Positions 899-11,044 are shown, numbered from the stretch's first letter. The stretch is DNA of 64,000 nt from Schizochytrium sp. TIO01 (GCA_004764695.1 SMSO01000032.1:62001-126000); one strand, 5' to 3'. Numbers and translations: made by a program. Notes: generated by a model from the sequence alone, not told the origin.

Positions 899-3800
899 AT
901 GAAAGCACAGCTTTGCATAGTTTTCCTCTTTCTCTTCATCAAAGTGTCTTTTGCAGACTTCTTGGCAGACTATCTTAATGACAAGACATTTGGCATTGAT
1001 CCAGGACCATGCCCGGGGCCATCCAAGAATGGCGATGTCTGTGTCGGACAGTGGGACAATTTACCCCCCCAAGCAAAAGAAATGCGAATTTGCTTGAGCA
1101 ACACGGATGACACATTTTGCGGCAAACTTGGAGATTTAATCATGAATGGAACTTTCACCATTTGGCAGCTTCAATGCAAAGACGTCTCCATCGCTGACAT
1201 TGCAATTACGTACCAGAAAACGAATGCCAATAGGCTACTGAACGCAACAGTGGATGCTTCGGATGTTCGTTTGGATTGCTCTGGTTGGGTTCGAATTCAA
1301 GATCTTGTGATTACAATAGCCGGCCTATCGCTCATTGTGACATTTGAGGGGCAATTTACACTTGATCAAACAGATCTTGCAGATGGCATTTCATTGAACT
1401 TAGGCGTTCAGTTTCAAACAAGTTCTACAACTTCGTTCAACACAGATCTTCCAGAACAGCTTTTAATTCCATACGACGAATGCCGCCTGGACCCCAATCT
1501 TGGTCTTGAACTAAAAACAGGGGAAGAAGGCATTGAGAATCTCAAAGTCTGCCTTGGCACAGTGAATGACTGTGGTTTTGACATTGGCTTCCTTCTTGGC
1601 TCTGGCGCCTCCGATATTGTTATGACTGTGATCATTAGCATAGCAGAAGCTGTGATGAGTGGGGTAGTCTGCCAACTGCTGGAGGAAGCTGCTGTGCTAA
1701 GCGAGACAAACTCTCCAGGTCCACTCACTCAGGTTATGCTGGATATCAAAGCTCAAATTGATACATGGGGGTTAGCACAGGGGGAGAACGTTGCTGAGGC
1801 TGACCAAGACGCTCACATCTTAGCTACGTCACCCTACACAATGATCACACAAGCCGAGCTTGACGTGGCAATTGATTTCAACTCCAGTGCAGTAGTGGAA
1901 GCTGTGTCTGTCGCACTGAATGGATGGTTAGGTACTGCAAGTGAACAGCCCAAATACCACTCCAAACCTGTCGTGAACGAGTTGGTTGATCTCCTTACTG
2001 ATCCCAAAGGGTCCATGTATGTTGATCTAGAAGCCCTTGATGCTTCACCTGAAGTACTTTTCCCTCTCGATGTTACCAATGCCACCGTTGAGTTCGAGTA
2101 TGTTCAACTTGTAGGACTTAGTAATATCTCTACTTTTGAAATCCTTGATGTGGGAACTGACATTGCACTCGCTGATAGGTATCGCCGTACCTTTAACAAC
2201 ACAATTGAAATCGACGAAATTTACCTCTTCGTTCGAACCTTTCTTCGTCTTGAGCGCGGTGATTGGGTGACCGAGTCTTGTAAGTATCCATCAGGGACCT
2301 GCACCAGTGATGCAAGCGAGTTTACATTTACCTTCCAAGTCACTGTTCGTAATGTCTCACTCGAAGCAAGCGTCCTCGCCGTCATCGACCCGTCTCAAAT
2401 CTCTGACTTACAGATTGGTCAACTCTTCGATATTGACTATCAGAGTGAGCCTATCGGAGCATTCTCTAATGCGATTCGCTGCATTTCTCCAGCAGCTTAT
2501 GCCTTAAATGTGACAAATTTACGAGCAAGTGTAGGTGAAATTGATGATCCCAAGCTAACCGACTTTGATGGGGATGGACTCTCCGAATTTATAACTGAGA
2601 CAATCGAGCTTGGTACAGATCTCGCCAAGGGGGCACTAAGCACAAAGTTTCCTGGCATTGCGAATGGCCCAATTCGAGAGCTCATTAATGAAGTTCTCCT
2701 AGAAAACGTCACAGTCTTCGGACGTGACGCATCAACGGTCTGCGACGCATGGCAAGGTTCTAGTACAAGCAATGGAATTAACATGGAAACTGTTGATTTC
2801 CAAGGGCAGTTATTCTCTCCAGTATATGCTCTTGTAAATGAAGGCGTAGGAGGCAATCCAATCCTTGATACAGAAGTAGATCTCAATGATCTTATCCTTA
2901 CTCTTCTCGAATACAATGAAGACACATACGCTGATTTTCCTTTTACACGTCAGGACGAGCCCGAAGGATCGTGGAGACTTAAACCTGAATATGATAGCGC
3001 TAGCACACTTACGGCTTTCGAGACAGATGACTATCTATCCTTCACCTCGCTCACTTTTGGGAATGTAGATTCTTTATACAAGTTACTTTTAGCTTCAACA
3101 GAGACTGGAGGACTCCTTGTGGACTTTGGGATTGGTGGTTCACTTGCGTTCGCCAATGGCAGTGGGATAGAAGCGGAAAGACCGTTTACCATGTCGGTTG
3201 ATTTCGAAGCTAATATTGAGACCAGAGGTATTCTTGAAGAGGCTGAGCTCGAACTCATTTTCCACCAGCTCGACTTTTCAATGGAGCTCACTACACTGGC
3301 GTACAGTCCTGACTTCTTCTATGGGCTAACCTTTTCACAACTACAATACGCCCCGTGTCTTATGGCCATTGTTCGTCAAGTTGAATTCCGTGATGCAGCA
3401 CGTAAAGCTGCAGTCAAATCGCTAAGCTTCAAGGTTACACCCTTATTCTCAGCATCTACAAACCCTGACAATAAGGTTTCCGAAGCCTTGAATCTACTTG
3501 CCACAGAACAGCCCGAGCAGCGAGCCGAAGCACTGGTTAATACTCTTTTGGATGCTAGCTTTGACGCCATCCTAAATACCATTGAATACATACCTGATAA
3601 TCTTGGAGAGATAGTAGTTACTGTGTGCGAAGCTTCAGAGTCTCTTGCAGACATTCTCGACAATATACCGCTGGGCAATTTCTTTCCAAACTTTACAGAA
3701 ATCATCGATGAATGCACAGGCGATATTGTCCCTCTGCCAACGATTTTAGAAGCAGAACGCTTCGTCTTTCCAGAAGACTACCCTAGCACTGTTATTAATG

Positions 3801-6800
3801 TGCAAGAGTCGGCAACACTGCAATTAATTCGCCAAGGCTTACAGGTTCTAAAGGGAGACACCCTTGAAGCAGTTTTAACAGCCCTTGCGAATTCTTCGGG
3901 TAGCGCTCTTGCAGATCTGTTCGAGCTGGAGAACCCCAACAATCCTGAGGATGGAAATGTGACCCTCGTACTTCCTTTGACAAGCTTGGGCTTAAGCGTA
4001 GATTTAATGGATGAATTTAACCCAGGTTTCAGAGCTGGATTTGATTCCCTCAGCATTGTCGGTTTCAGTCGATTGCTAAAATCCTTCAATCTTCTTGAAC
4101 CTGTTGGGAGCCTGACTACTCGAAGCCGAGTGAGCTTTCAAGATAGTGACCCAGTGGAGATTGTTTTTGCAACATCGTTAGAACTTGATGGGTCGGCCGT
4201 TGGTGAAGCTGCAGGCACTATAGTTCGAGAAGAAGTCAATGTCAGTATATTTGTGAGTGACCTTGAACTTATTGTTGACGTTGTCAGTGCTCTCAATAGC
4301 GAATTTCTAGAAAATCTTACGTTTTCACAACTTCTAAGCATTGATGCGTCTCAGAGTTTCTCCTTGGGTGATCATTTCATGGGTTGCCTCTTTGCCGCAG
4401 TCTATGATGATGGCCTTTTTATACGAAGTTTAGAGCTTACACTAGGAGAATTGGGCGGGGTCAGCCTGGTTTCTTCACGTGAAATTTTAAGTGAAGGCAT
4501 GGAAAAGTTGGTGGATGCCATTGTGGATATATCCACGTATTTCTACGCTGAGGTGGCCACAAACATCTTCCAAAATTGTGTTCGTGAATACATAAACTCG
4601 ATCATAAGTGCCGCCATGGGTCTTTCATCGTGCCCTGAAGCCAGCAGCATTTCGCCCCCACCCCTTAGTGGCGACGAGCGCATCCTTCGCTTCTCGACAT
4701 GGGATGCTTTGACCAGTGTTTCGTCATTTTGGTTTGATACCATAGTACCTGAGAAGTATGCTTCCGTAAATGCTGCTGTGAATGCAGCATTCAACAACCT
4801 GGTATTTTTTAACACAGAAGCATCAATCGGTGATCAGTCTTTCTCCATGAGCATACCGCTAGTCTACAATAGTATAAAATATGGTACTGTAGACTTGGGT
4901 ATTGCAGATGTCACAATTACGAACCTAGGTAGTTTTAGTGATCTGCGTTTGGCAGTTCCATTCAATAGTATTGGGGAACCAATGTTCAGGGTCGCTGCTG
5001 CGTCAAGTACTCGTCTACTTGCTTCTCCTAATGAGAGAAGCTCAGACTCATTTGAATACATCACACAGACAAACATTCTCATCGATGGGCCGTTGGAGAT
5101 TAATGGAAAGTTTTCGTTGAATGCTACAGACCTCTTTCGCGACTACCCGAACATGGTAAACCAACTTGATATTACACTAGCTGTCTCTGACATTGAATTA
5201 GGTCTAAGACTACTCTTAGAGATTGATCTTGTTGATCTCATGGGTGTGCAATTTAAGAGTTTTGGATCTATCAGCGAAATTCCATGCGCCTTAGTTCCAG
5301 TAAAAGCGCTGCAGCCTTTAGATTTCAATCTATCTACAAGAGACATTACAATAACGGTGGGGTGTGCAGGCGAGTGTGATTTCCCGCTCATCAACTATCT
5401 GGAAGATGGCAGTGTTTTTACAAATGAGAATGGAGACACGATCAGTGAACTGTTTGACGAATTCGTGGAATACGTAAATGGGTATCTGGTGACCCAAGGT
5501 GCACAAGAGTTGATCAATATAGCCATCTCTCAGGCTGAACAAAACTGTGCTGCGATTACAGAGATCGCAGAGGACCTGTTGACATTTGACGAAATACAGA
5601 AGAACGACATGGCTTCTTTGTTCGCATACATCTTTTTGGGTGGGTGTGGCGTAGCTGGCATAGTAGCTTTGGCTTTGGTACCTCTTCACCGTCTTCGTGA
5701 GAGACGACAGGTTGCAAAACACTTGACTGGGGAACTTCCAGCAAGTAGCCATGGCAACGCAAATTTAGCATCTGACATGGGTCTTTTGGAGCTTCGTATG
5801 AAAAGTCTCTTTCAGCATCCCGCCACGCCACTGGTAGCGCGGTATTTTATTCCATTTGTGCAAATCATGAATGTGGTAGGGTTAGTGATTGCAATCGGTT
5901 TCTCTGATGCAGCTAATATCACAATGTCACTTACCATTTTTGGAGCACAAACAGAGACTGTAGCACTGGTTCCCTTTACGTTGTTCTCAACGATCAATGA
6001 TACATGGAATTCTGGTGCCTGGCCACTTGCTCTTCTCATTACTGTGGCTTCATGTATGTGGCCCATCGTGAAAAACCTGGCACTCCTCTTCCTATGGTTC
6101 GCACCAAGTACAATTGTGAGTGCAGCAAGACGCCGTGCGATTCTAGAGTACCTTGACATGCTGGGCAAGTGGTCATTTCTGGACGTGTTTGTCATTGTAA
6201 TAACTCTGGCAGCGCTGCGTAACTATGTGGTAGGGGCCTACTATGCAAACCTATCGTTTCTTGACACAGATGTTCTCATTACAGACGTGAATGTCACACC
6301 TGAAAATGGTCTTACCCTCTTGTGTTTTGTTGCAGCATTGTCTTTGATCATCAACCATATCGTGCTAGTCATACATGACAAAATTGATACCTCCAATCGT
6401 CTATGCGAGGCACGCGCGACAGGTCGCGAAAAGGCAATGCAAAGTACTCCAGCAATTGCAATGGACAAATTGAGAATTATATCTTATAAATTTGTAGGTA
6501 CTACAAGAACAGGTCAAGTTCGTGCCGTAGATTTTCGTATGGCCAAAGGGCTTGTCTTCCTGCTGCTGCTATCCTTTTCTCTTATTTGTGCAGGTATATC
6601 AGTACCGCTGATTACATTTGAACTTCGAGGCCTCCTTGGTTTGCTTTTGGAAGTGATCTCCAAAGACTCTCCTGTGCTTGGCTCTCAATTAAACATCAAG
6701 ACATACTCTGTCCTTGGAATGGGTCGTGTTTTAGGCGAATCAGCCACAGACACGACATGGGAAACAGCAGTGATTGGATTTTTCAAGACAATGTTTGCCA

Positions 6801-7594
6801 TATCTGTATATGTAGCTCCTCTTCTGCTTCTAGCGATGCTTGCAATTCTATTCCTTCTTCCAATGAATCTGAATATGAGCAAGTCAGTCTTTTTTTGGAC
6901 AAAGATCAATTCATATTGGTCTGGCTTGGAGATTTTTCTAGTAGCTATAATTCTTGGATTGCTAGAACTCGGTATCGTGACACAGTTTATCACTGATTTT
7001 ATCACAGATGATACTTGCTCACAAATCAAAGCGGCCATTGAGCTTGCGGTGTCAGATCCAGAGAAAGATGGCGTGTGTTTCACAATCCATTCATACTTGG
7101 AACCTACTAGTGTGCTTCTTTTCATGGGTCTCAGTTTTCAACTTGTTGCCTTTTACATAATCACCGTCATTTCGTCTACGGTGATTGCAGATCGGAACTA
7201 CGCAGCGTACCGGAACATTCATAATGATGCAAAACCAAAACGTATGAGTATGCTCAATCGCTGGTTGCTGCAAAAGTTTACAAGCCTAGAAGTAGCTCCG
7301 GATGCCCGCCAGTCTCATGGGCGAGGCCCAGCTCCAGTACAAGGACCATTTACATTGCTGGAAGAAGCTGGAGCAGATGCAGTAAGCAAAGACTTTGCTG
7401 ACCCAGTTTTCTCATGTCCATGCCACCCACGTACTATTTACAAGTTATGTTGCGATTTTGAAGCTGGTCAGCGAAAAGCAGAGGCCCGTATTGACGCCTG
7501 GCATGCACGAATTGATGCCCTGAGCGACTCGCGGGTCCAAGATAGTAATTTGTCAAAAACTCAACATATTGAGCGATCACCTTTTCCTTTGTGA
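899..7594 (+). CDS. Large membrane protein: signal peptide, ~5 BPI/LBP (TULIP)-like extracellular modules, TM helix, two PqiA/LetA (paraquat-inducible protein A) domains
   Basis: 2231-aa ORF. N-terminal signal MKAQLCIVFLFLFIKVSFA. PqiA motifs FSTINDTWNSGAWPLALLITVASCMWPIVK...LGKWSFLDVFVIVI, and a second copy TYSVLGMG...VAPLLLL...YWSGLEIFLVAII. The acidic, beta-rich ectodomain has ~300-aa internal repeats. Confidence 0.85.
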   Translation: MKAQLCIVFLFLFIKVSFADFLADYLNDKTFGIDPGPCPGPSKNGDVCVGQWDNLPPQAKEMRICLSNTDDTFCGKLGDLIMNGTFTIWQLQCKDVSIADIAITYQKTNANRLLNATVDASDVRLDCSGWVRIQDLVITIAGLSLIVTFEGQFTLDQTDLADGISLNLGVQFQTSSTTSFNTDLPEQLLIPYDECRLDPNLGLELKTGEEGIENLKVCLGTVNDCGFDIGFLLGSGASDIVMTVIISIAEAVMSGVVCQLLEEAAVLSETNSPGPLTQVMLDIKAQIDTWGLAQGENVAEADQDAHILATSPYTMITQAELDVAIDFNSSAVVEAVSVALNGWLGTASEQPKYHSKPVVNELVDLLTDPKGSMYVDLEALDASPEVLFPLDVTNATVEFEYVQLVGLSNISTFEILDVGTDIALADRYRRTFNNTIEIDEIYLFVRTFLRLERGDWVTESCKYPSGTCTSDASEFTFTFQVTVRNVSLEASVLAVIDPSQISDLQIGQLFDIDYQSEPIGAFSNAIRCISPAAYALNVTNLRASVGEIDDPKLTDFDGDGLSEFITETIELGTDLAKGALSTKFPGIANGPIRELINEVLLENVTVFGRDASTVCDAWQGSSTSNGINMETVDFQGQLFSPVYALVNEGVGGNPILDTEVDLNDLILTLLEYNEDTYADFPFTRQDEPEGSWRLKPEYDSASTLTAFETDDYLSFTSLTFGNVDSLYKLLLASTETGGLLVDFGIGGSLAFANGSGIEAERPFTMSVDFEANIETRGILEEAELELIFHQLDFSMELTTLAYSPDFFYGLTFSQLQYAPCLMAIVRQVEFRDAARKAAVKSLSFKVTPLFSASTNPDNKVSEALNLLATEQPEQRAEALVNTLLDASFDAILNTIEYIPDNLGEIVVTVCEASESLADILDNIPLGNFFPNFTEIIDECTGDIVPLPTILEAERFVFPEDYPSTVINVQESATLQLIRQGLQVLKGDTLEAVLTALANSSGSALADLFELENPNNPEDGNVTLVLPLTSLGLSVDLMDEFNPGFRAGFDSLSIVGFSRLLKSFNLLEPVGSLTTRSRVSFQDSDPVEIVFATSLELDGSAVGEAAGTIVREEVNVSIFVSDLELIVDVVSALNSEFLENLTFSQLLSIDASQSFSLGDHFMGCLFAAVYDDGLFIRSLELTLGELGGVSLVSSREILSEGMEKLVDAIVDISTYFYAEVATNIFQNCVREYINSIISAAMGLSSCPEASSISPPPLSGDERILRFSTWDALTSVSSFWFDTIVPEKYASVNAAVNAAFNNLVFFNTEASIGDQSFSMSIPLVYNSIKYGTVDLGIADVTITNLGSFSDLRLAVPFNSIGEPMFRVAAASSTRLLASPNERSSDSFEYITQTNILIDGPLEINGKFSLNATDLFRDYPNMVNQLDITLAVSDIELGLRLLLEIDLVDLMGVQFKSFGSISEIPCALVPVKALQPLDFNLSTRDITITVGCAGECDFPLINYLEDGSVFTNENGDTISELFDEFVEYVNGYLVTQGAQELINIAISQAEQNCAAITEIAEDLLTFDEIQKNDMASLFAYIFLGGCGVAGIVALALVPLHRLRERRQVAKHLTGELPASSHGNANLASDMGLLELRMKSLFQHPATPLVARYFIPFVQIMNVVGLVIAIGFSDAANITMSLTIFGAQTETVALVPFTLFSTINDTWNSGAWPLALLITVASCMWPIVKNLALLFLWFAPSTIVSAARRRAILEYLDMLGKWSFLDVFVIVITLAALRNYVVGAYYANLSFLDTDVLITDVNVTPENGLTLLCFVAALSLIINHIVLVIHDKIDTSNRLCEARATGREKAMQSTPAIAMDKLRIISYKFVGTTRTGQVRAVDFRMAKGLVFLLLLSFSLICAGISVPLITFELRGLLGLLLEVISKDSPVLGSQLNIKTYSVLGMGRVLGESATDTTWETAVIGFFKTMFAISVYVAPLLLLAMLAILFLLPMNLNMSKSVFFWTKINSYWSGLEIFLVAIILGLLELGIVTQFITDFITDDTCSQIKAAIELAVSDPEKDGVCFTIHSYLEPTSVLLFMGLSFQLVAFYIITVISSTVIADRNYAAYRNIHNDAKPKRMSMLNRWLLQKFTSLEVAPDARQSHGRGPAPVQGPFTLLEEAGADAVSKDFADPVFSCPCHPRTIYKLCCDFEAGQRKAEARIDAWHARIDALSDSRVQDSNLSKTQHIERSPFPL

Positions 7595-8209: not shown

Positions 8210-11044
8210 TTACATGGGCTTTTGCAACACGCCAAGTTGGAACATAAGGTCTTGGGCCACAATATCAAGCTTGGCGTATGATACCTTGGAGGTGTTTGGG
8301 TTAGTCGAAACGAAAATGCGTCCATCAAACTTGCATGGCTTGGGTTCTTGCACAAGAGCGCCGCCATAGAATCCAGTAATTTCCCACTTGACCTCTAATA
8401 TTTTATCATTGAGGGCAACAGAGGATCGTGACGAAGTTGTTGATGAAGCATCGCTGCTCGAGCTGCTCACGCGGCGGTGTACCGGGACCTTTGTTCGCGG
8501 AGGAAAAGCCATCTCCTCGCGAACAACAGTTGCATTGATTGTAAACGTTGGGAACGCGCGGCGGAGACGTCGCAGGTAAGTGAGGCATGCCGGAATGCCC
8601 TTGTATTTGACACCCATATGTATATCGTCAAACATACATTTTGTATCAAGAATCTCTTCAGCTAAGCGCTCTCGTTCTGAGGCAAGCTCGGCTTGGAAGA
8701 GGCGAGCAAGGTTTGCAGCGTTCCGTCTCCTCAAAGCTGCAGCACGCGCCTCTTGTGCCTCACAAGCGCTCAGAGGGGTGCTCGGATGAGCATCAAGATT
8801 GAGCACTGACCCAGTACTGTCTGATCCACCAGGGTGATTTTCTGTTGAGTTAGCAAGAGATGTTTCGAGTCTCTTACCATTTCCAGAAGGCGCCGACTGC
8901 TGAGATGACGCCACGGACGCATCCTGTGACGCAGAGTGCATACCATTGCCCTGTTTTTGGTTACTGTTGTTGTTATTATCATCAATTTTGGTGGAAGTAG
9001 CTCCTTGAACCATTGCAGGACCACTGGCGGCGGGGTTGCCGTCAAGAGAGAGAGGAGGGATCGCCCCAGGTGAGTTTGCCGCATTGCTGTTGGTGGCCTC
9101 CAGGTTAGGTGGAGGTAATACGCCCTTCTTTGGCGACTTGAGCAAACCAAGCTGCCCGACCAAGCTCATCGCATCCCAGCTGATAATCATCTCCGTAATT
9201 AGTTCAGGTTTGGTAGGATCTGCAAAGCTAAACTCTACGATGACGTTAAAGGATACGGTGCGTGCCTTTTGCTCCTCTTTAGTGAGGAGGGGCTCTGGAG
9301 CGCCGCTCGGCGTCGAGGCCATCGAAGACATCGAGGGCGAGCCGTGACGCGGAGAGGAACCCCAGAAGCCAGACCCGTTACCGTTTTCCGATGTCCCTCC
9401 GGCTCCCGAGTTAGCTGCCCTCGAGAATGTGCCACGGCCACCAACCACCGAGGAAGGAAGCGAAAAGCCGTTCTCAGGAACGTTGATCGAGGTCGAGTTG
9501 AATCCGAAAGGCGTCGCTGGTGATTCCGTCCAGGCCCCACCCGAAGACGATGATGAGCCCTGGTCGCCCCCCTTCTTGCGCGGGCGAAGGCGGCCAATAT
9601 AAACACCTGAGAGACGCCAAGTGCCCGTGACTTTATCGTCCTGCTGGTCCGACACGATGGAGAGTTCCTCACCGTCGAAGGCGCGCAGAGCTTTCGTCTT
9701 CTCACAGGCCTGTGTGTCAAATGCTTTGGTAACAAACGACATATACCGCGTTACCTCGCGCACGCCTCGTTTATCCACGTTGTTATTTGCGTCAACCAGG
9801 ACCACTTCAGGATGCACACAAAGCTTGGCAATTTTCTCTCGAGCTCGTGAGCCCGCAATCGAGAAGAGATGAATCGCCAACGCGGCGCTGTTTTCCTGAA
9901 ATCGCTTGATCTGGTCCACGGCACTTGGGGAGCTAAGAATTTCGTCATTGATTTGGAGATCACATTTGGTGAGTAGTTTGCCCCACAGCTCGTCGAGAAT
10001 GTCTTTGCACGCCGGGTTACTGTGCACCCAGACAACGAACCTGGCAAACTGCTCTGGTTTGAGGATCGTTGTTAGTTCGTTCAGAGAATCCCCAACCTTT
10101 TTGTTGCGCCTGCACCTCTTGACGATGCTCTCCATCTTCTCGAAAGCGCAATCAAGCTCTGTGCGGAGTCTCTTCGCATACCTCACCCGCTTGTTGAACT
10201 CTTGCTGCTGCTCGGCCGTCAGCTCGAGCTCCGCCATAAGTTTCTTAGTAAGTAAGTCTGCCTCGGACCCTGGAGCTGACTCTACCGTCATCATTTGAAG
10301 GTATTGTTTAGTCAGCACTTCGGGTTCCACTAGTCTCTGCAATCTTCCTAGGATGAAACCAATCGCCTTTTGCCTGTCTCTTCCATGGTCTTGGTGTCTC
10401 TCCATGTAAACCTGCACCTTCCTCCTGAGTGCCATTTCGGCCTCTGATTTTGCCGCTCCAGCCCTTCGGGCTTTATTCGCATTTCCACTTCCGCTGCCCC
10501 CCGAGCTTCCGCCGATCTGCTCTTCTTCATGTGCCTTCTTCACAAGAGCCTGCATTTCCGCGATGAGCTCCTGTTCCTCGCCAAGGCCAACGCCTGCTGG
10601 GGCGCCCCCTGGCCCCCCGTGCTGATACCCAGAGAGCACGGAGGAGGTCGCGGAGGCACCACCGGCGGAGAGGCCAAGAGCAGCCTCAGACGCAGCGGCA
10701 GCGCCGAGCTGGAGTTCAAGGCGCAGCTTTGCATTCTCTTCAATGAGCTCGTCCACTCGCTCCTTGAGTTGCTGAGCGTGCTCTTTCTTGCGCTTGCGGC
10801 AGTTTCTGACAGCCTCGCGGTTCTTTTCACGCTGCGAGAGGGCCTTCTCGTTGGCTTCTTCGCCGCGACGACGGCTCCCGGAGCCGCCTTGGCCGCCACC
10901 TCCGACACCGGAGGCCGATCTGCCGCCGCCCACACTCGGTGGTGCCATGCTTGCGTAGCCCTGAGAGTGCCACGCCGCGACAGCCTCGTGCTGCGCTTGC
11001 TGCGCCTGCGCTGCCTGTCGCGCAGCCTTCGCGCGAGAGCTCAT
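8210..11044 (-). CDS. bZIP transcription factor with a central helical (DOG1-like) region and two C-terminal SnoaL/NTF2-like domains
   Basis: Basic region REKNREAVRNCRKRKK (N-x7-R) followed by the zipper LKERVDELIEENAKLRLEL. Central motif LTAEQQ...ILKPEQFARFVVWV. Two SnoaL-type units: HPEVVLVD..RGVREVTRYMSFVTKAF..WRLSG..ISWDAMSLVGQLG and DTKCMFDD..KGIPACLTYLRRLRRAFP..KWEITG..QDLMFQLG. Confidence 0.85.
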   Translation of the reverse strand: MSSRAKAARQAAQAQQAQHEAVAAWHSQGYASMAPPSVGGGRSASGVGGGGQGGSGSRRRGEEANEKALSQREKNREAVRNCRKRKKEHAQQLKERVDELIEENAKLRLELQLGAAAASEAALGLSAGGASATSSVLSGYQHGGPGGAPAGVGLGEEQELIAEMQALVKKAHEEEQIGGSSGGSGSGNANKARRAGAAKSEAEMALRRKVQVYMERHQDHGRDRQKAIGFILGRLQRLVEPEVLTKQYLQMMTVESAPGSEADLLTKKLMAELELTAEQQQEFNKRVRYAKRLRTELDCAFEKMESIVKRCRRNKKVGDSLNELTTILKPEQFARFVVWVHSNPACKDILDELWGKLLTKCDLQINDEILSSPSAVDQIKRFQENSAALAIHLFSIAGSRAREKIAKLCVHPEVVLVDANNNVDKRGVREVTRYMSFVTKAFDTQACEKTKALRAFDGEELSIVSDQQDDKVTGTWRLSGVYIGRLRPRKKGGDQGSSSSSGGAWTESPATPFGFNSTSINVPENGFSLPSSVVGGRGTFSRAANSGAGGTSENGNGSGFWGSSPRHGSPSMSSMASTPSGAPEPLLTKEEQKARTVSFNVIVEFSFADPTKPELITEMIISWDAMSLVGQLGLLKSPKKGVLPPPNLEATNSNAANSPGAIPPLSLDGNPAASGPAMVQGATSTKIDDNNNNSNQKQGNGMHSASQDASVASSQQSAPSGNGKRLETSLANSTENHPGGSDSTGSVLNLDAHPSTPLSACEAQEARAAALRRRNAANLARLFQAELASERERLAEEILDTKCMFDDIHMGVKYKGIPACLTYLRRLRRAFPTFTINATVVREEMAFPPRTKVPVHRRVSSSSSDASSTTSSRSSVALNDKILEVKWEITGFYGGALVQEPKPCKFDGRIFVSTNPNTSKVSYAKLDIVAQDLMFQLGVLQKPM

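Follow-up and report, generated by a model that had tools for sequence, protein, structure and literature searches.

A giant thraustochytrid TUPA-like protein with a predicted chain of five TULIP modules and a LetA-like membrane domain

The gene at positions 899-7594 of a 64,000-nt window of the Schizochytrium sp. TIO01 genome (GCA_004764695.1 SMSO01000032.1:62001-126000; the window is the whole stretch of DNA analysed) raises the question of whether a single polypeptide can combine a LetA/PqiA-type transporter with the lipid conduit that it would serve. A sequence-only reading had proposed that TULIP-like domains fused to the transporter take the place of the MCE tunnel. The comparisons described here make it likely that the product is a giant thraustochytrid (Labyrinthulomycetes) TUPAL, in which a chain of five TULIP modules joined to a LetA-like pseudo-dimer would operate as a lipid relay.

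Gene and predicted topology

The gene is a single uninterrupted, intronless ORF of 2231 codons on the + strand (899..7594), and translation starts at the first ATG in this frame. The protein consists, in order, of a signal peptide, a very acidic ectodomain of ~1,550 aa, a transmembrane helix (TM0), two PqiA repeats of four transmembrane helices (4-TM) each, and a C-terminal tail. Hydrophobic segments were mapped by a Kyte-Doolittle scan, in which the signal peptide (residues 1-19; 899..955, +) gives a hydropathy peak of 2.34 at residues 5-23. The N-terminus of the relatives is likewise hydrophobic and precedes a conserved ADFL motif. The ectodomain (residues 20-1575) carries a net charge of -157, 17 N-x-S/T sites and 1.9% Lys.

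TM0 (residues 1578-1596; 5630..5686, +; hydropathy 2.33) lies within a long helix of the AF2 model (model residues 532-572) and is followed by a basic RLRERR stretch, as in the positive-inside rule; P1595 and H1597 are nearly invariant in the alignment of relatives. This helix is predicted to bring the chain back to the cytosol before the LetA-like domain. The sequence-only reading had anticipated both the signal peptide with its acidic ectodomain (~1550 aa) and a transmembrane helix, placed at ~5609-5685. Because of the signal peptide and TM0, the ectodomain should be extracytoplasmic, at the cell surface or in an organelle lumen, and these two features together with the basic stretch after TM0 predict a non-cytosolic topology for the TULIP modules. 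The cytosolic C-terminal tail (residues 2101-2231 and the stop codon; 7199..7594, +) follows the last transmembrane helix and holds CPC and CC; C2184, C2185 and W2201 are invariant in the six closest relatives.

The LetA-like membrane domain

The two PqiA-type domains proposed from the sequence were recovered by the Pfam PqiA profile (PF04403) in two stretches, with a score of 55.5 bits (cut-off 23.8; E 8e-15); for the C-terminal 661 aa taken by themselves the score is 57.2 bits. Hydrophobic helices fall into two sets of four, at about residues 1650-1825 and about 1884-2096. The first repeat (TMD-N, residues 1646-1830; 5834..6388, +) is predicted to contain four transmembrane helices and extracytoplasmic beta-strands and includes the best PF04403 stretch (1693-1773). 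The second repeat (TMD-C, residues 1881-2100; 6539..7198, +) is delimited by four hydropathy peaks, AF2 helices and the VIA alignment. In VIA, model residues 607-1061 superpose on residues 64-418 of E. coli LetA (9n8w_A) with Z 12.0 over 297 residues, and in the unbiased search LetA (Z 11.9; 291-297 residues aligned across both runs) was the only chain with a Z of at least 8 among 48,161. Foldseek also returned 9n8w_A (E 3.5e-6, prob 1.00). The next-best structural matches after LetA were TARPs, at Z about 7, and repeat 1 alone matched TARPs and claudins in VIA at Z 6-7. Direct sequence matches to LetA are weak (E 0.015 to 2). By hhalign, repeat 1 aligns with LetA TMD-C (E 3.1e-5) and LetA TMD-N (E 0.025), and repeat 2 aligns with repeat 1 (E 1.4e-4) and LetA TMD-N (E 1.9e-3).

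The GKWSFLDVF motif of repeat 1 (residues 1756-1764; 6164..6190, +) is, in phmmer and hhalign alignments, the counterpart of GRWSM-psi-D-psi-F at LetA 361-369, a motif whose role in LetA has been described (PMC13017536). In 28 relatives its G is conserved in 26, K in 27, W in 22, S in 24 and D in 22. Repeat 2 holds the degenerate motif YWSGLEIF (residues 2006-2013; 6914-6937, +), with W2007 present in 27 of the 28. Both motifs had been singled out in the sequence-only reading. The polar network of LetA comprises S321, K328, S364, D367, T402, K178 and D181, the last three of which are without a reliable mapping here. LetA S321, P325, K328, S364 and D367 align to S1718, P1722, K1725, S1759 and D1762, which are conserved in 23, 28, 24, 24 and 22 of the 28 relatives, respectively. 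These alignments indicate that the asymmetry of the repeats is reversed, with the motif and polar-network residues of LetA TMD-C found in the first repeat, and the active pocket would for this reason probably adjoin TM0 and the membrane-proximal ectodomain module, M5.

The zinc ribbons that the sequence-only reading had not found evident are indeed missing, as CxxC pairs are absent from the cytosolic linkers 1597-1645 and 1826-1885, the second of which contains one Cys only. The two tandem repeats are best modelled as a LetA/PqiA-type pseudo-dimer without Zn ribbons, which would place the protein in a ZnR-less eukaryotic branch and not with canonical bacterial LetA. A search of the 64-Mb genome assembly for the MCE domain (PF02470, MlaD/MCE), which was detected in four control genomes, returned no match, although a domain missing from an assembly is not thereby absolutely proven absent. 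This result fits, and lends support to, the proposal that fused TULIP domains replace the MCE tunnel.

The ectodomain and its candidate function

Structures of the ectodomain and membrane domain were taken from two AF2 models, m53d98eff8786 on the M1 side (pLDDT 78.5, pTM 0.60) and m33efdec68cff on the M4 side (pLDDT 83.1, pTM 0.63); each was built on only 30-33 sequences, and the inter-module geometry comes from these models. They point to a chain of five TULIP-fold modules, comprising a JHBP/CETP-like cap (M1) and M2-M5. When the N-terminal model was compared by VIA, in an unbiased search independent of Foldseek, with 48,161 chains, all ten chains with a Z of at least 5 were TULIP proteins. 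Foldseek with the ectodomain model returned LBP (7e-6), CETP (8e-6) and BPI (1e-5), and the leads from the ESM Atlas (language-model score 0.85) fall without exception in the Grp7_allergen, JHBP and LBP_BPI_CETP families. In each module AF2 predicts strands as long as 28 residues together with helices 31-49 residues in length. The TULIP-like ectodomain suggested earlier is thus supported by the models, with each of the five modules covered. No Pfam family, TULIP families included, was found at E <= 10 in any of three ectodomain pieces, so that TULIP membership is assigned from the models at the level of fold or superfamily only, not of a Pfam family. The TULIP matches are middling, with Z 5.6-7.8, an rmsd of 5-7 A and 6-15% identity.

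M1 (residues 20-365; 956..1993, +), delimited from the M1-side model and VIA, is a Cys-rich distal TULIP-like cap with conserved cysteines C38, C48, C195 and C258. Its VIA matches are beta-carotene-binding protein (BBP; Z 7.8), JHBP (7.6), Takeout (7.1), the CETP N-domain (6.5) and Mdm12 (5.8), and in the unbiased search CETP (6.4) and BPI (5.8); profile similarity to M2-M5 was not found by hhalign (E >= 0.0097). The remaining modules are mutually homologous, with hhalign E-values of 4e-6 to 4e-22. M2 (residues 366-655; 1994..2863, +) is TULIP-like by VIA and hhalign, matching BBP (Z 5.7, 199/220 residues aligned), Takeout (5.6) and the E-Syt2 SMP (4.3) in the wide VIA search, and M4 (E 3.9e-22), M5 (4.9e-10) and M3 (1e-8) in hhalign. 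M3 (residues 656-1010; 2864..3928, +), defined in the same way, has a TULIP-like core with a helical extension; it matches Der f 7 (Z 6.8), the Mmm1 SMP (6.2), OrfX3 (5.5-5.9), SPLUNC1 (5.5) and latherin (5.0), and by profile M5 (E 9.4e-11) and M4 (4.3e-6). M4 (residues 1011-1310; 3929..4828, +; TULIP-like by the M4-side model, VIA and hhalign) matches CETP (Z 7.0), Mdm12 (6.3-6.5), SPLUNC1 (5.6) and the TMEM24 SMP (5.3), and M5 by profile (E 5.1e-13). M5 (residues 1311-1560; 4829..5578, +; wide VIA search, model residues 228-491) is a TULIP-like module with conserved cysteines C1463, C1489, C1493 and C1550, and matches Der f 7 (Z 5.7), Takeout (5.7, 168/216 aligned), Der p 7 (5.6), BBP (5.6) and Mmm1 (5.1). 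A BPI match covers M4 and M5 together (VIA Z 6.3). Among relatives that keep the PqiA domain, the number of modules varies from 5 to about 9, with 8-9 in P0032, P0040 and P0045, yet module order and ends are retained.

In the proposed mechanism, which follows the one put forward for LetA, phospholipids would be moved by the LetA-like domain between the bilayer and a pocket on the extracytoplasmic side. The neighbouring TULIP module, standing in for an MCE tunnel, would then receive lipids from this domain or supply them to it. A hydrophobic cavity is expected in every TULIP module, and the modules would pass lipids along a rod whose length is estimated at roughly 30 nm by scaling from two-domain BPI (~13.5 nm). 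At its far end the rod may meet a lipid source or sink, be it a distal membrane, a particle or one on the wall side.

The same domains could instead form a surface-displayed binder of lipids or hydrophobic ligands with no conduit, that is, a scavenger, sensor or antimicrobial like BPI, LBP and PLUNC, with modules that bind bacterial lipids, sterols or carotenoids independently and a LetA-like domain that serves chiefly to anchor the protein or as a tetraspanin-like organiser. Taken singly, the modules do match best to soluble ligand carriers and to proteins of pattern recognition (BBP, JHBP, Takeout, Der f 7, LBP, BPI), single LetA repeats resemble the non-transporters TARPs and claudins (PMC13017536), the Zn ribbons required in LetA are absent, and thraustochytrids are decomposers that live among bacteria. 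Such a role is nevertheless unlikely. Across the 28 relatives there is strong conservation of the LetA transport motif and of the polar-network residues, which a domain serving only as an anchor would not be expected to show. Fusions of PqiA with TULIP domains are found repeatedly among eukaryotes, and in Plasmodium the fusion is needed for bulk lipid recycling. A variable module number with fixed order and ends also suggests a length-dependent role.

The extreme acidity of the ectodomain, its N-glycosylation sequons and conserved cysteines, a repeat number that varies as in surface rods, and the middling Z values would also suit a structural or adhesive rod, a spacer or attachment (for instance in wall scales or the ectoplasmic net) built on a TULIP-like scaffold with no lipid role. 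We consider this quite improbable, given that the matches of all five modules are confined to lipid-carrier folds and include nothing adhesin-like or Ig-like, that the rod is covalently joined to a conserved lipid-transporter domain, and that PfTUPA, the only characterised member of the class, acts in lipid transfer. The eukaryotic gene model was deduced from an ORF alone, and none of the listed sequencing runs is recorded as RNA. That the ORF is an artefact, through the merging of two adjacent genes or as a pseudogene that is not expressed, is nevertheless scarcely credible. The 6.7-kb frame has no stop, and its full-length architecture (about 2100-2350 aa) recurs in 28 aligned relatives, at identities as low as 21% and with residues in both halves of the protein invariant, which argues against a chance ORF or fused gene model. 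The same genome also contains a second full-length paralogue, and an independent Logan assembly contains a copy with 99.9% identity.

Relation to TUPALs, LetA and TULIP carriers

The idea of a PqiA-TULIP fusion, on which the preferred reading of a lipid-relaying TUPAL builds, is not new. Wong & Levine (2017, PMC5507252) reported protist BPI/CETP proteins anchored by PqiA, and Guillen-Samander et al. (bioRxiv 10.64898/2026.09.11.750981, 2026) characterised PfTUPA and defined the class of 'TUPALs' (TUPA-like proteins), whose described arrangements have one or two BPI-like domains. PfTUPA combines a luminal TULIP domain with PqiA and is required for lipid recycling from the digestive vacuole (bioRxiv 10.64898/2026.09.11.750981), the same lipid-transfer function as proposed here.

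The gene product is an unusually long member of this class. As in TUPALs, a 2 x 4-TM PqiA/LetA-type domain and TULIP domains on the predicted non-cytosolic side occur in one polypeptide, with no Zn ribbons and no MCE partner, and protist LetA-like proteins likewise lack Zn ribbons (PMC13017536). The N-terminal BPI-like position and the extra transmembrane helix are shared with the preprint's '2xBPI' type, which paralogue L012 of this genome resembles. In contrast to the one or two BPI-like domains of the preprint, where stramenopiles have only a beta-sheet extension of PqiA, five modules are predicted here and 8-9 in relatives, which we read as a new arrangement within the class. The modules have no Pfam BPI match, and they are N-terminal, whereas the TULIP domain of PfTUPA is C-terminal. 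Both the poly-TULIP chain and the reversed repeat asymmetry seem to be undescribed.

With E. coli LetA (YebS) and PqiA the protein shares tandem tetraspanin-like 4-TM repeats with extracytoplasmic beta-strands, and with LetA the G-[RK]-W-S-x-psi-D-psi-F motif and the Ser/Lys/Ser/Asp polar-network residues. It differs in having TM0 as an additional helix, in lacking the Zn ribbons, which are indispensable to E. coli LetA, and in the placement of the motif and polar network, which LetA has in repeat 2. LetA and PqiA pair with the MCE tunnels LetB and PqiB, whereas the putative partner here is covalently fused and has a TULIP fold.

As in BPI/LBP/CETP, JHBP, Takeout, Der p 7/Der f 7 and PLUNC, each module is modelled with long twisted beta-strands around a long helix, and two consecutive modules align to two-domain BPI and LBP. 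The modules are also predicted to be extracellular or luminal and to have disulfide-forming cysteines, as in known TULIP carriers. The differences lie in the number of modules (five, not one or two), their size (~250-350 aa each, not about 200), the low identity without a Pfam match, and the membrane anchor. Neighbouring modules in the AF2 models are also oriented unlike those of BPI (rmsd 20-24 A with two aligned together).

ERMES (Mmm1-Mdm12-Mdm34) offers a working analogy for a poly-TULIP conduit. In it, too, TULIP-superfamily (SMP) domains are placed in series, and they build a bridge along which a lipid pathway runs (Wozny et al. 2023, PMC7614606); two of its members, Mmm1 and Mdm12, also came up as structural matches of the modules described here. 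Three SMP domains make up ERMES, which lies in the cytosol between ER and mitochondria as a non-covalent heterotrimer, whereas the thraustochytrid protein would be one covalent chain of five extracytoplasmic modules coupled to a LetA-like transporter.

Gene, protein layout and relatives

The gene occupies 899..7594 of the forward strand as a single unbroken ORF of 2231 codons, with 10 codons between the preceding stop and the first ATG (an open frame of 2241 aa). Hydropathy scanning divides the product into an N-terminal signal peptide (residues 1-19), a non-hydrophobic ectodomain (residues 20-1575) with a net charge of -157, 17 N-x-S/T sequons and very scarce Lys and His, a strong transmembrane (TM) helix, TM0 (residues 1578-1596), followed by RLRERR, and two groups of four helices, repeat 1 (residues ~1650-1825) and repeat 2 (residues ~1884-2096). 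Pfam PqiA (PF04403) matches in two stretches with 55.5 bits against a cut-off of 23.8 (E 8e-15), and the PqiA motif is present as GKWSFLDVF at residues 1756-1764 and, in a degenerate form, as YWSGLEIF at residues 2006-2013. The ORF, signal peptide, TM helix and two motifs picked out by the sequence-only reading are real, with every coordinate within a few codons, and its assignment of the membrane part to PqiA is borne out by the PF04403 score above the cut-off. The remainder of the chain is a cytosolic tail (7199-7591, residues 2101-2231) that carries a conserved Trp (W2201) and CPC and CC clusters (C2173, C2175, C2184 and C2185); these cysteines could serve for acylation or bind metal. In many relatives the chain terminates in S-I-x-V, but the gene product has a different C-terminus. 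Neither Rfam nor tRNA scans gave a hit in the window. An adjoining 944-aa ORF on the reverse strand (8210-11044) lies in a GC-richer stretch (0.53-0.59, vs 0.44 in the gene studied).

Full-length relatives are scarce, and a word-indexed search returned six. Two of these belong to Hondaea fermentalgiana (61% and 43% identity), which places the window in a thraustochytrid (Labyrinthulomycetes, stramenopiles) other than Hondaea. Residues 376-1575, used as a single-sequence query and not a cut profile in an exhaustive HMMER search across 1.84 billion cluster representatives, retrieved 60 proteins (30 at E < 1e-30), most of them 2100-2350 aa in length and a few 3269-3405 aa. Named family members are from Hondaea and, as a distant member, from the diatom Pseudictyota. 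Five others bear dinoflagellate or chytrid fungus names, namely P0014, P0015 and P0036 (Durusdinium trenchii) and P0030 and P0045 (Batrachochytrium salamandrivorans); they are located on contigs of 13-495 kb and may be genuine or labyrinthulomycete-like contaminants. A 99.9% identical copy of the gene is present in a Logan assembly, and none of the 23 listed sequencing runs containing the sequence is recorded as RNA. Twenty-eight full-length sequences can be aligned over their whole length and share invariant positions in the ectodomain as well as in the TM domain, which rules out a gene-fusion artefact in the form of a fused gene model. Judged by this conservation, the ORF is a real, conserved gene.

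The LetA-like membrane domain and its two repeats

The membrane domain was modelled with AF2 over residues 1040-2130 from a 33-sequence alignment (pLDDT 83.1, pTM 0.63). Searched against the PDB with Foldseek, this model best matches the LetA chain of E. coli LetAB (9n8w_A, E 3.5e-6, probability 1.00), and VIA-align superimposes model residues 607-1061 (protein 1646-2100) on LetA 64-418 with Z 12.0 over 297 residues, a span that covers both TM repeats and leaves out the Zn ribbons. In a Foldseek-independent search of 48,161 representative chains only LetA reaches Z >= 8. TARPs and claudins also match single repeats (Z 6-7), a likeness that has been reported for LetA itself (PMC13017536). At the level of sequence, phmmer and profile searches of PDB sequences gave only a weak LetA match (E 2.3, then 0.015), and repeat 2 alone found no match there.

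No CxxC pairs were found in the cytosolic linkers, and the Zn ribbons are therefore absent, as the sequence-only reading had noted; protist LetA-like proteins likewise lack them (PMC13017536). A short beta-hairpin, YKFVGTTRTGQVRAVDF, is still predicted in the inter-repeat linker (6389-6538, residues 1831-1880), at the site of LetA's second Zn ribbon. There are no cysteines in it, F1865, G1867, G1872 and R1875 are invariant in six close relatives, and the hairpin may be the vestige of a Zn ribbon that has lost its cysteines. MCE (PF02470), the tunnel domain that partners bacterial LetA and PqiA, had no match in the host genome and was detected in control genomes.

In LetA the GRWSM-psi-D-psi-F motif and an essential polar network (S321, K328, S364, D367 and others) reside in the C-terminal repeat (PMC13017536), whereas the canonical motif here is in the first repeat and the version in the second is degenerate. 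Each repeat was compared by profile with each repeat of E. coli LetA (TMD-N and TMD-C). Repeat 1 matched TMD-C with E 3.1e-5 and TMD-N with E 0.025, while repeat 2 matched TMD-N with E 1.9e-3 and TMD-C with E 0.022; these E-values are modest, yet the four comparisons and the conservation counts all show a consistent pattern. In the profile alignment LetA S321, P325, K328, S364 and D367 correspond to S1718, P1722, K1725, S1759 and D1762, which are conserved in 23, 28, 24, 24 and 22 of 28 relatives, respectively. We infer that the 'active' repeat is probably repeat 1, the one adjoining TM0 and the last ectodomain module (M5). No statement of this position was found in the literature consulted on LetA or on TUPA-like proteins (TUPALs, with PqiA and TULIP in one chain). 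The reversed position of the polar network would offer a simple handle on which repeat is active.

Ectodomain modules and their number

Pfam searches with three pieces of the ectodomain (E <= 10) recovered no family, and phmmer and profile searches of PDB sequences left it without a match. A second AF2 model covers residues 20-1100 (30 sequences, pLDDT 78.5, pTM 0.60). In both models a unit recurs in which very long beta-strands, of up to 28 residues, are succeeded by a helix of 31-49 residues and by shorter ones. All of the best Foldseek matches of the ectodomain belong to the TULIP superfamily, led by LBP (7e-6), CETP (8e-6) and BPI (1e-5), with further matches to OrfX2, OrfX1-OrfX3, Der p 7, Takeout, JHBP, PLUNC and Mdm12-Mmm1. 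A VIA search made without Foldseek preselection gave ten chains with Z >= 5, all ten of them TULIP proteins, and ESM Atlas leads were to the Grp7_allergen, JHBP and LBP_BPI_CETP families only (0.85).

Five modules can be delimited, with Z values that are middling taken singly: M1 (residues 20-365; beta-carotene-binding protein, BBP, 7.8, JHBP 7.6, CETP 6.4-6.5, BPI 5.8), M2 (366-655; BBP 5.7 over 199/220 residues, Takeout 5.6), M3 (656-1010; Der f 7 6.8, Mmm1 6.2), M4 (1011-1310; CETP 7.0, Mdm12 6.3) and M5 (1311-1560; Der f 7 5.7, Takeout 5.7, BBP 5.6). The TULIP assignment is made because one superfamily is exclusively enriched over five separate modules, with Foldseek probabilities of 1.00. 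A beta-jellyroll of the LptA type, an AsmA/TamB fold or a VPS13-type groove was rejected for the ectodomain, as the corresponding matches are low and all below the TULIP ones (LPD-3, Foldseek probability 0.07; LptD, Z about 4.1; autotransporter barrels, Z 4.6-5.2). The models thus support an ectodomain made up of five consecutive modules with the TULIP fold, and the BPI/TULIP-like fold predicted by the sequence-only reading was recovered by Foldseek; together with the Pfam match, these fold matches support its picture of a TULIP-like ectodomain joined to a PqiA/LetA domain. The pTM of 0.60-0.63 for multi-module models of more than 1000 residues tentatively suggests a fixed packing between modules.

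Profile-profile comparison on the 28-sequence alignment relates M2-M5 to one another (M2-M4, E 3.9e-22; M4-M5, 5.1e-13; M3-M5, 9.4e-11; M2-M5, 4.9e-10; M2-M3, 1e-8; M3-M4, 4.3e-6); M1 is tied to them by fold only and is unrelated by sequence. The 28-sequence alignment was needed for this linkage; when only six sequences were used, comparing the chain with itself yielded a single significant repeat pair. With HMMs of the five modules, canonical relatives show the order M1-M5, and 8-9 modules are found in P0032, P0040, P0045 and P0049 (2562-3405 aa), which are metagenomic or labelled Batrachochytrium salamandrivorans BASA81. The extra units in these four proteins are M3/M4-like and internal, M1 and M5 staying terminal, and PqiA is retained in P0032 and P0040 at about residue 2800-2950. 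M2-like and M5-like units alternate two or three times in the distant diatom-type proteins.

The host genome contains at least 10 PqiA-family ORFs, which form a graded series in the length of their N-terminal parts; for a eukaryote such an expansion is unusual. Loci other than the gene studied (L011-L019) are at C30:269166-275897 and C30:6461207-6465787 and on contigs C36, C13, C31, C34 and C32. One of them, L011, is a second five-module giant, giving two in the genome altogether, and L012 (1527 aa) has an M2-like and an M5-like module ahead of TM0 and PqiA, resembling the published '2xBPI' TUPAL type. In the seven shorter ORFs (600-1070 aa) the module HMMs detect no module, and some have long N-terminal regions of unassigned fold. 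Thraustochytrids are industrial producers of DHA and lipids and are genetically manipulable, and with ten PqiA-family paralogues they may offer in this protein a candidate surface or vacuolar machine for lipid import or export that is of applied interest too.

Proposed lipid transport and known systems

In silico the analysis shows the topology, a LetA-like fold that keeps the transport residues, five modules with the TULIP fold and the absence of both MCE and Zn ribbons. In such a protein lipids would be exchanged between the bilayer and a pocket on the extracytoplasmic side of repeat 1 and then handed to M5, from which the TULIP modules would relay or bridge them onward to a distal target. 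Extrapolation from BPI, whose two domains measure ~13.5 nm, gives a five-module rod length of about 30 nm. In this family a chain can contain 5-9 TULIP modules, a multiplication that may point to bridging over tens of nm and not to short-range shuttling, and the family is a natural length series for testing shuttle vs bridge models. The full proposition, a poly-TULIP chain acting as a covalent, length-tunable lipid bridge in which 5-9 barrels end to end form a continuous ~30-55 nm hydrophobic path, fed by a LetA-type transporter with its active repeat swapped to the N-terminal position, is tentative and rather doubtful. Were it true, the bridge would add to MCE tunnels and VPS13/RBG grooves a third architecture for carrying lipids over long distances, and with it thraustochytrids could move lipids between the plasma (or vacuolar) membrane and a remote extracellular or intraluminal target: a membrane, prey or substrate. 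A precedent for a serial TULIP bridge is ERMES, whose bridge, with its lipid pathway, is built from three SMP domains (TULIP superfamily) arranged one after another (PMC7614606).

The sequence-only reading had TULIP-like tubes taking the place of the MCE tunnel, which is right, with experimental support from a relative, and is not new, having been published in 2017 and 2026. According to Wong & Levine (2017, PMC5507252), a C-terminal PqiA domain is the anchor of a few CETP/BPI proteins in protists and amoebae, possibly with the same lipids being handled. ZnR-less LetA-like proteins of protists, joined to extracytoplasmic domains, were pointed out in the LetA paper (Nature 2026, PMC13017536), which also proposed lipid transport of the bridge type. 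A preprint of September 2026 (10.64898/2026.09.11.750981) showed that Plasmodium PfTUPA, a luminal TULIP domain with PqiA, is required for lipid recycling from the digestive vacuole, and set out TUPALs as a class spread across eukaryotes, its members carrying one or two BPI-like domains on either the N- or the C-terminal side. For stramenopile TUPALs it described only a beta-sheet extension of PqiA. Its structures were drawn from the AlphaFold public database and TED domains (10.64898/2026.09.11.750981). In the literature searched no mention was found of chains with at least five TULIP modules, nor any paper connecting PqiA with thraustochytrids. Proteins this long may perhaps be without models in the AlphaFold public database. 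The partnership of PqiA and TULIP is a recognised eukaryotic class of lipid transfer proteins; the TUPAL class is known already, and the gene product adds to it a new and much longer variant, in which the repeat asymmetry is reversed.
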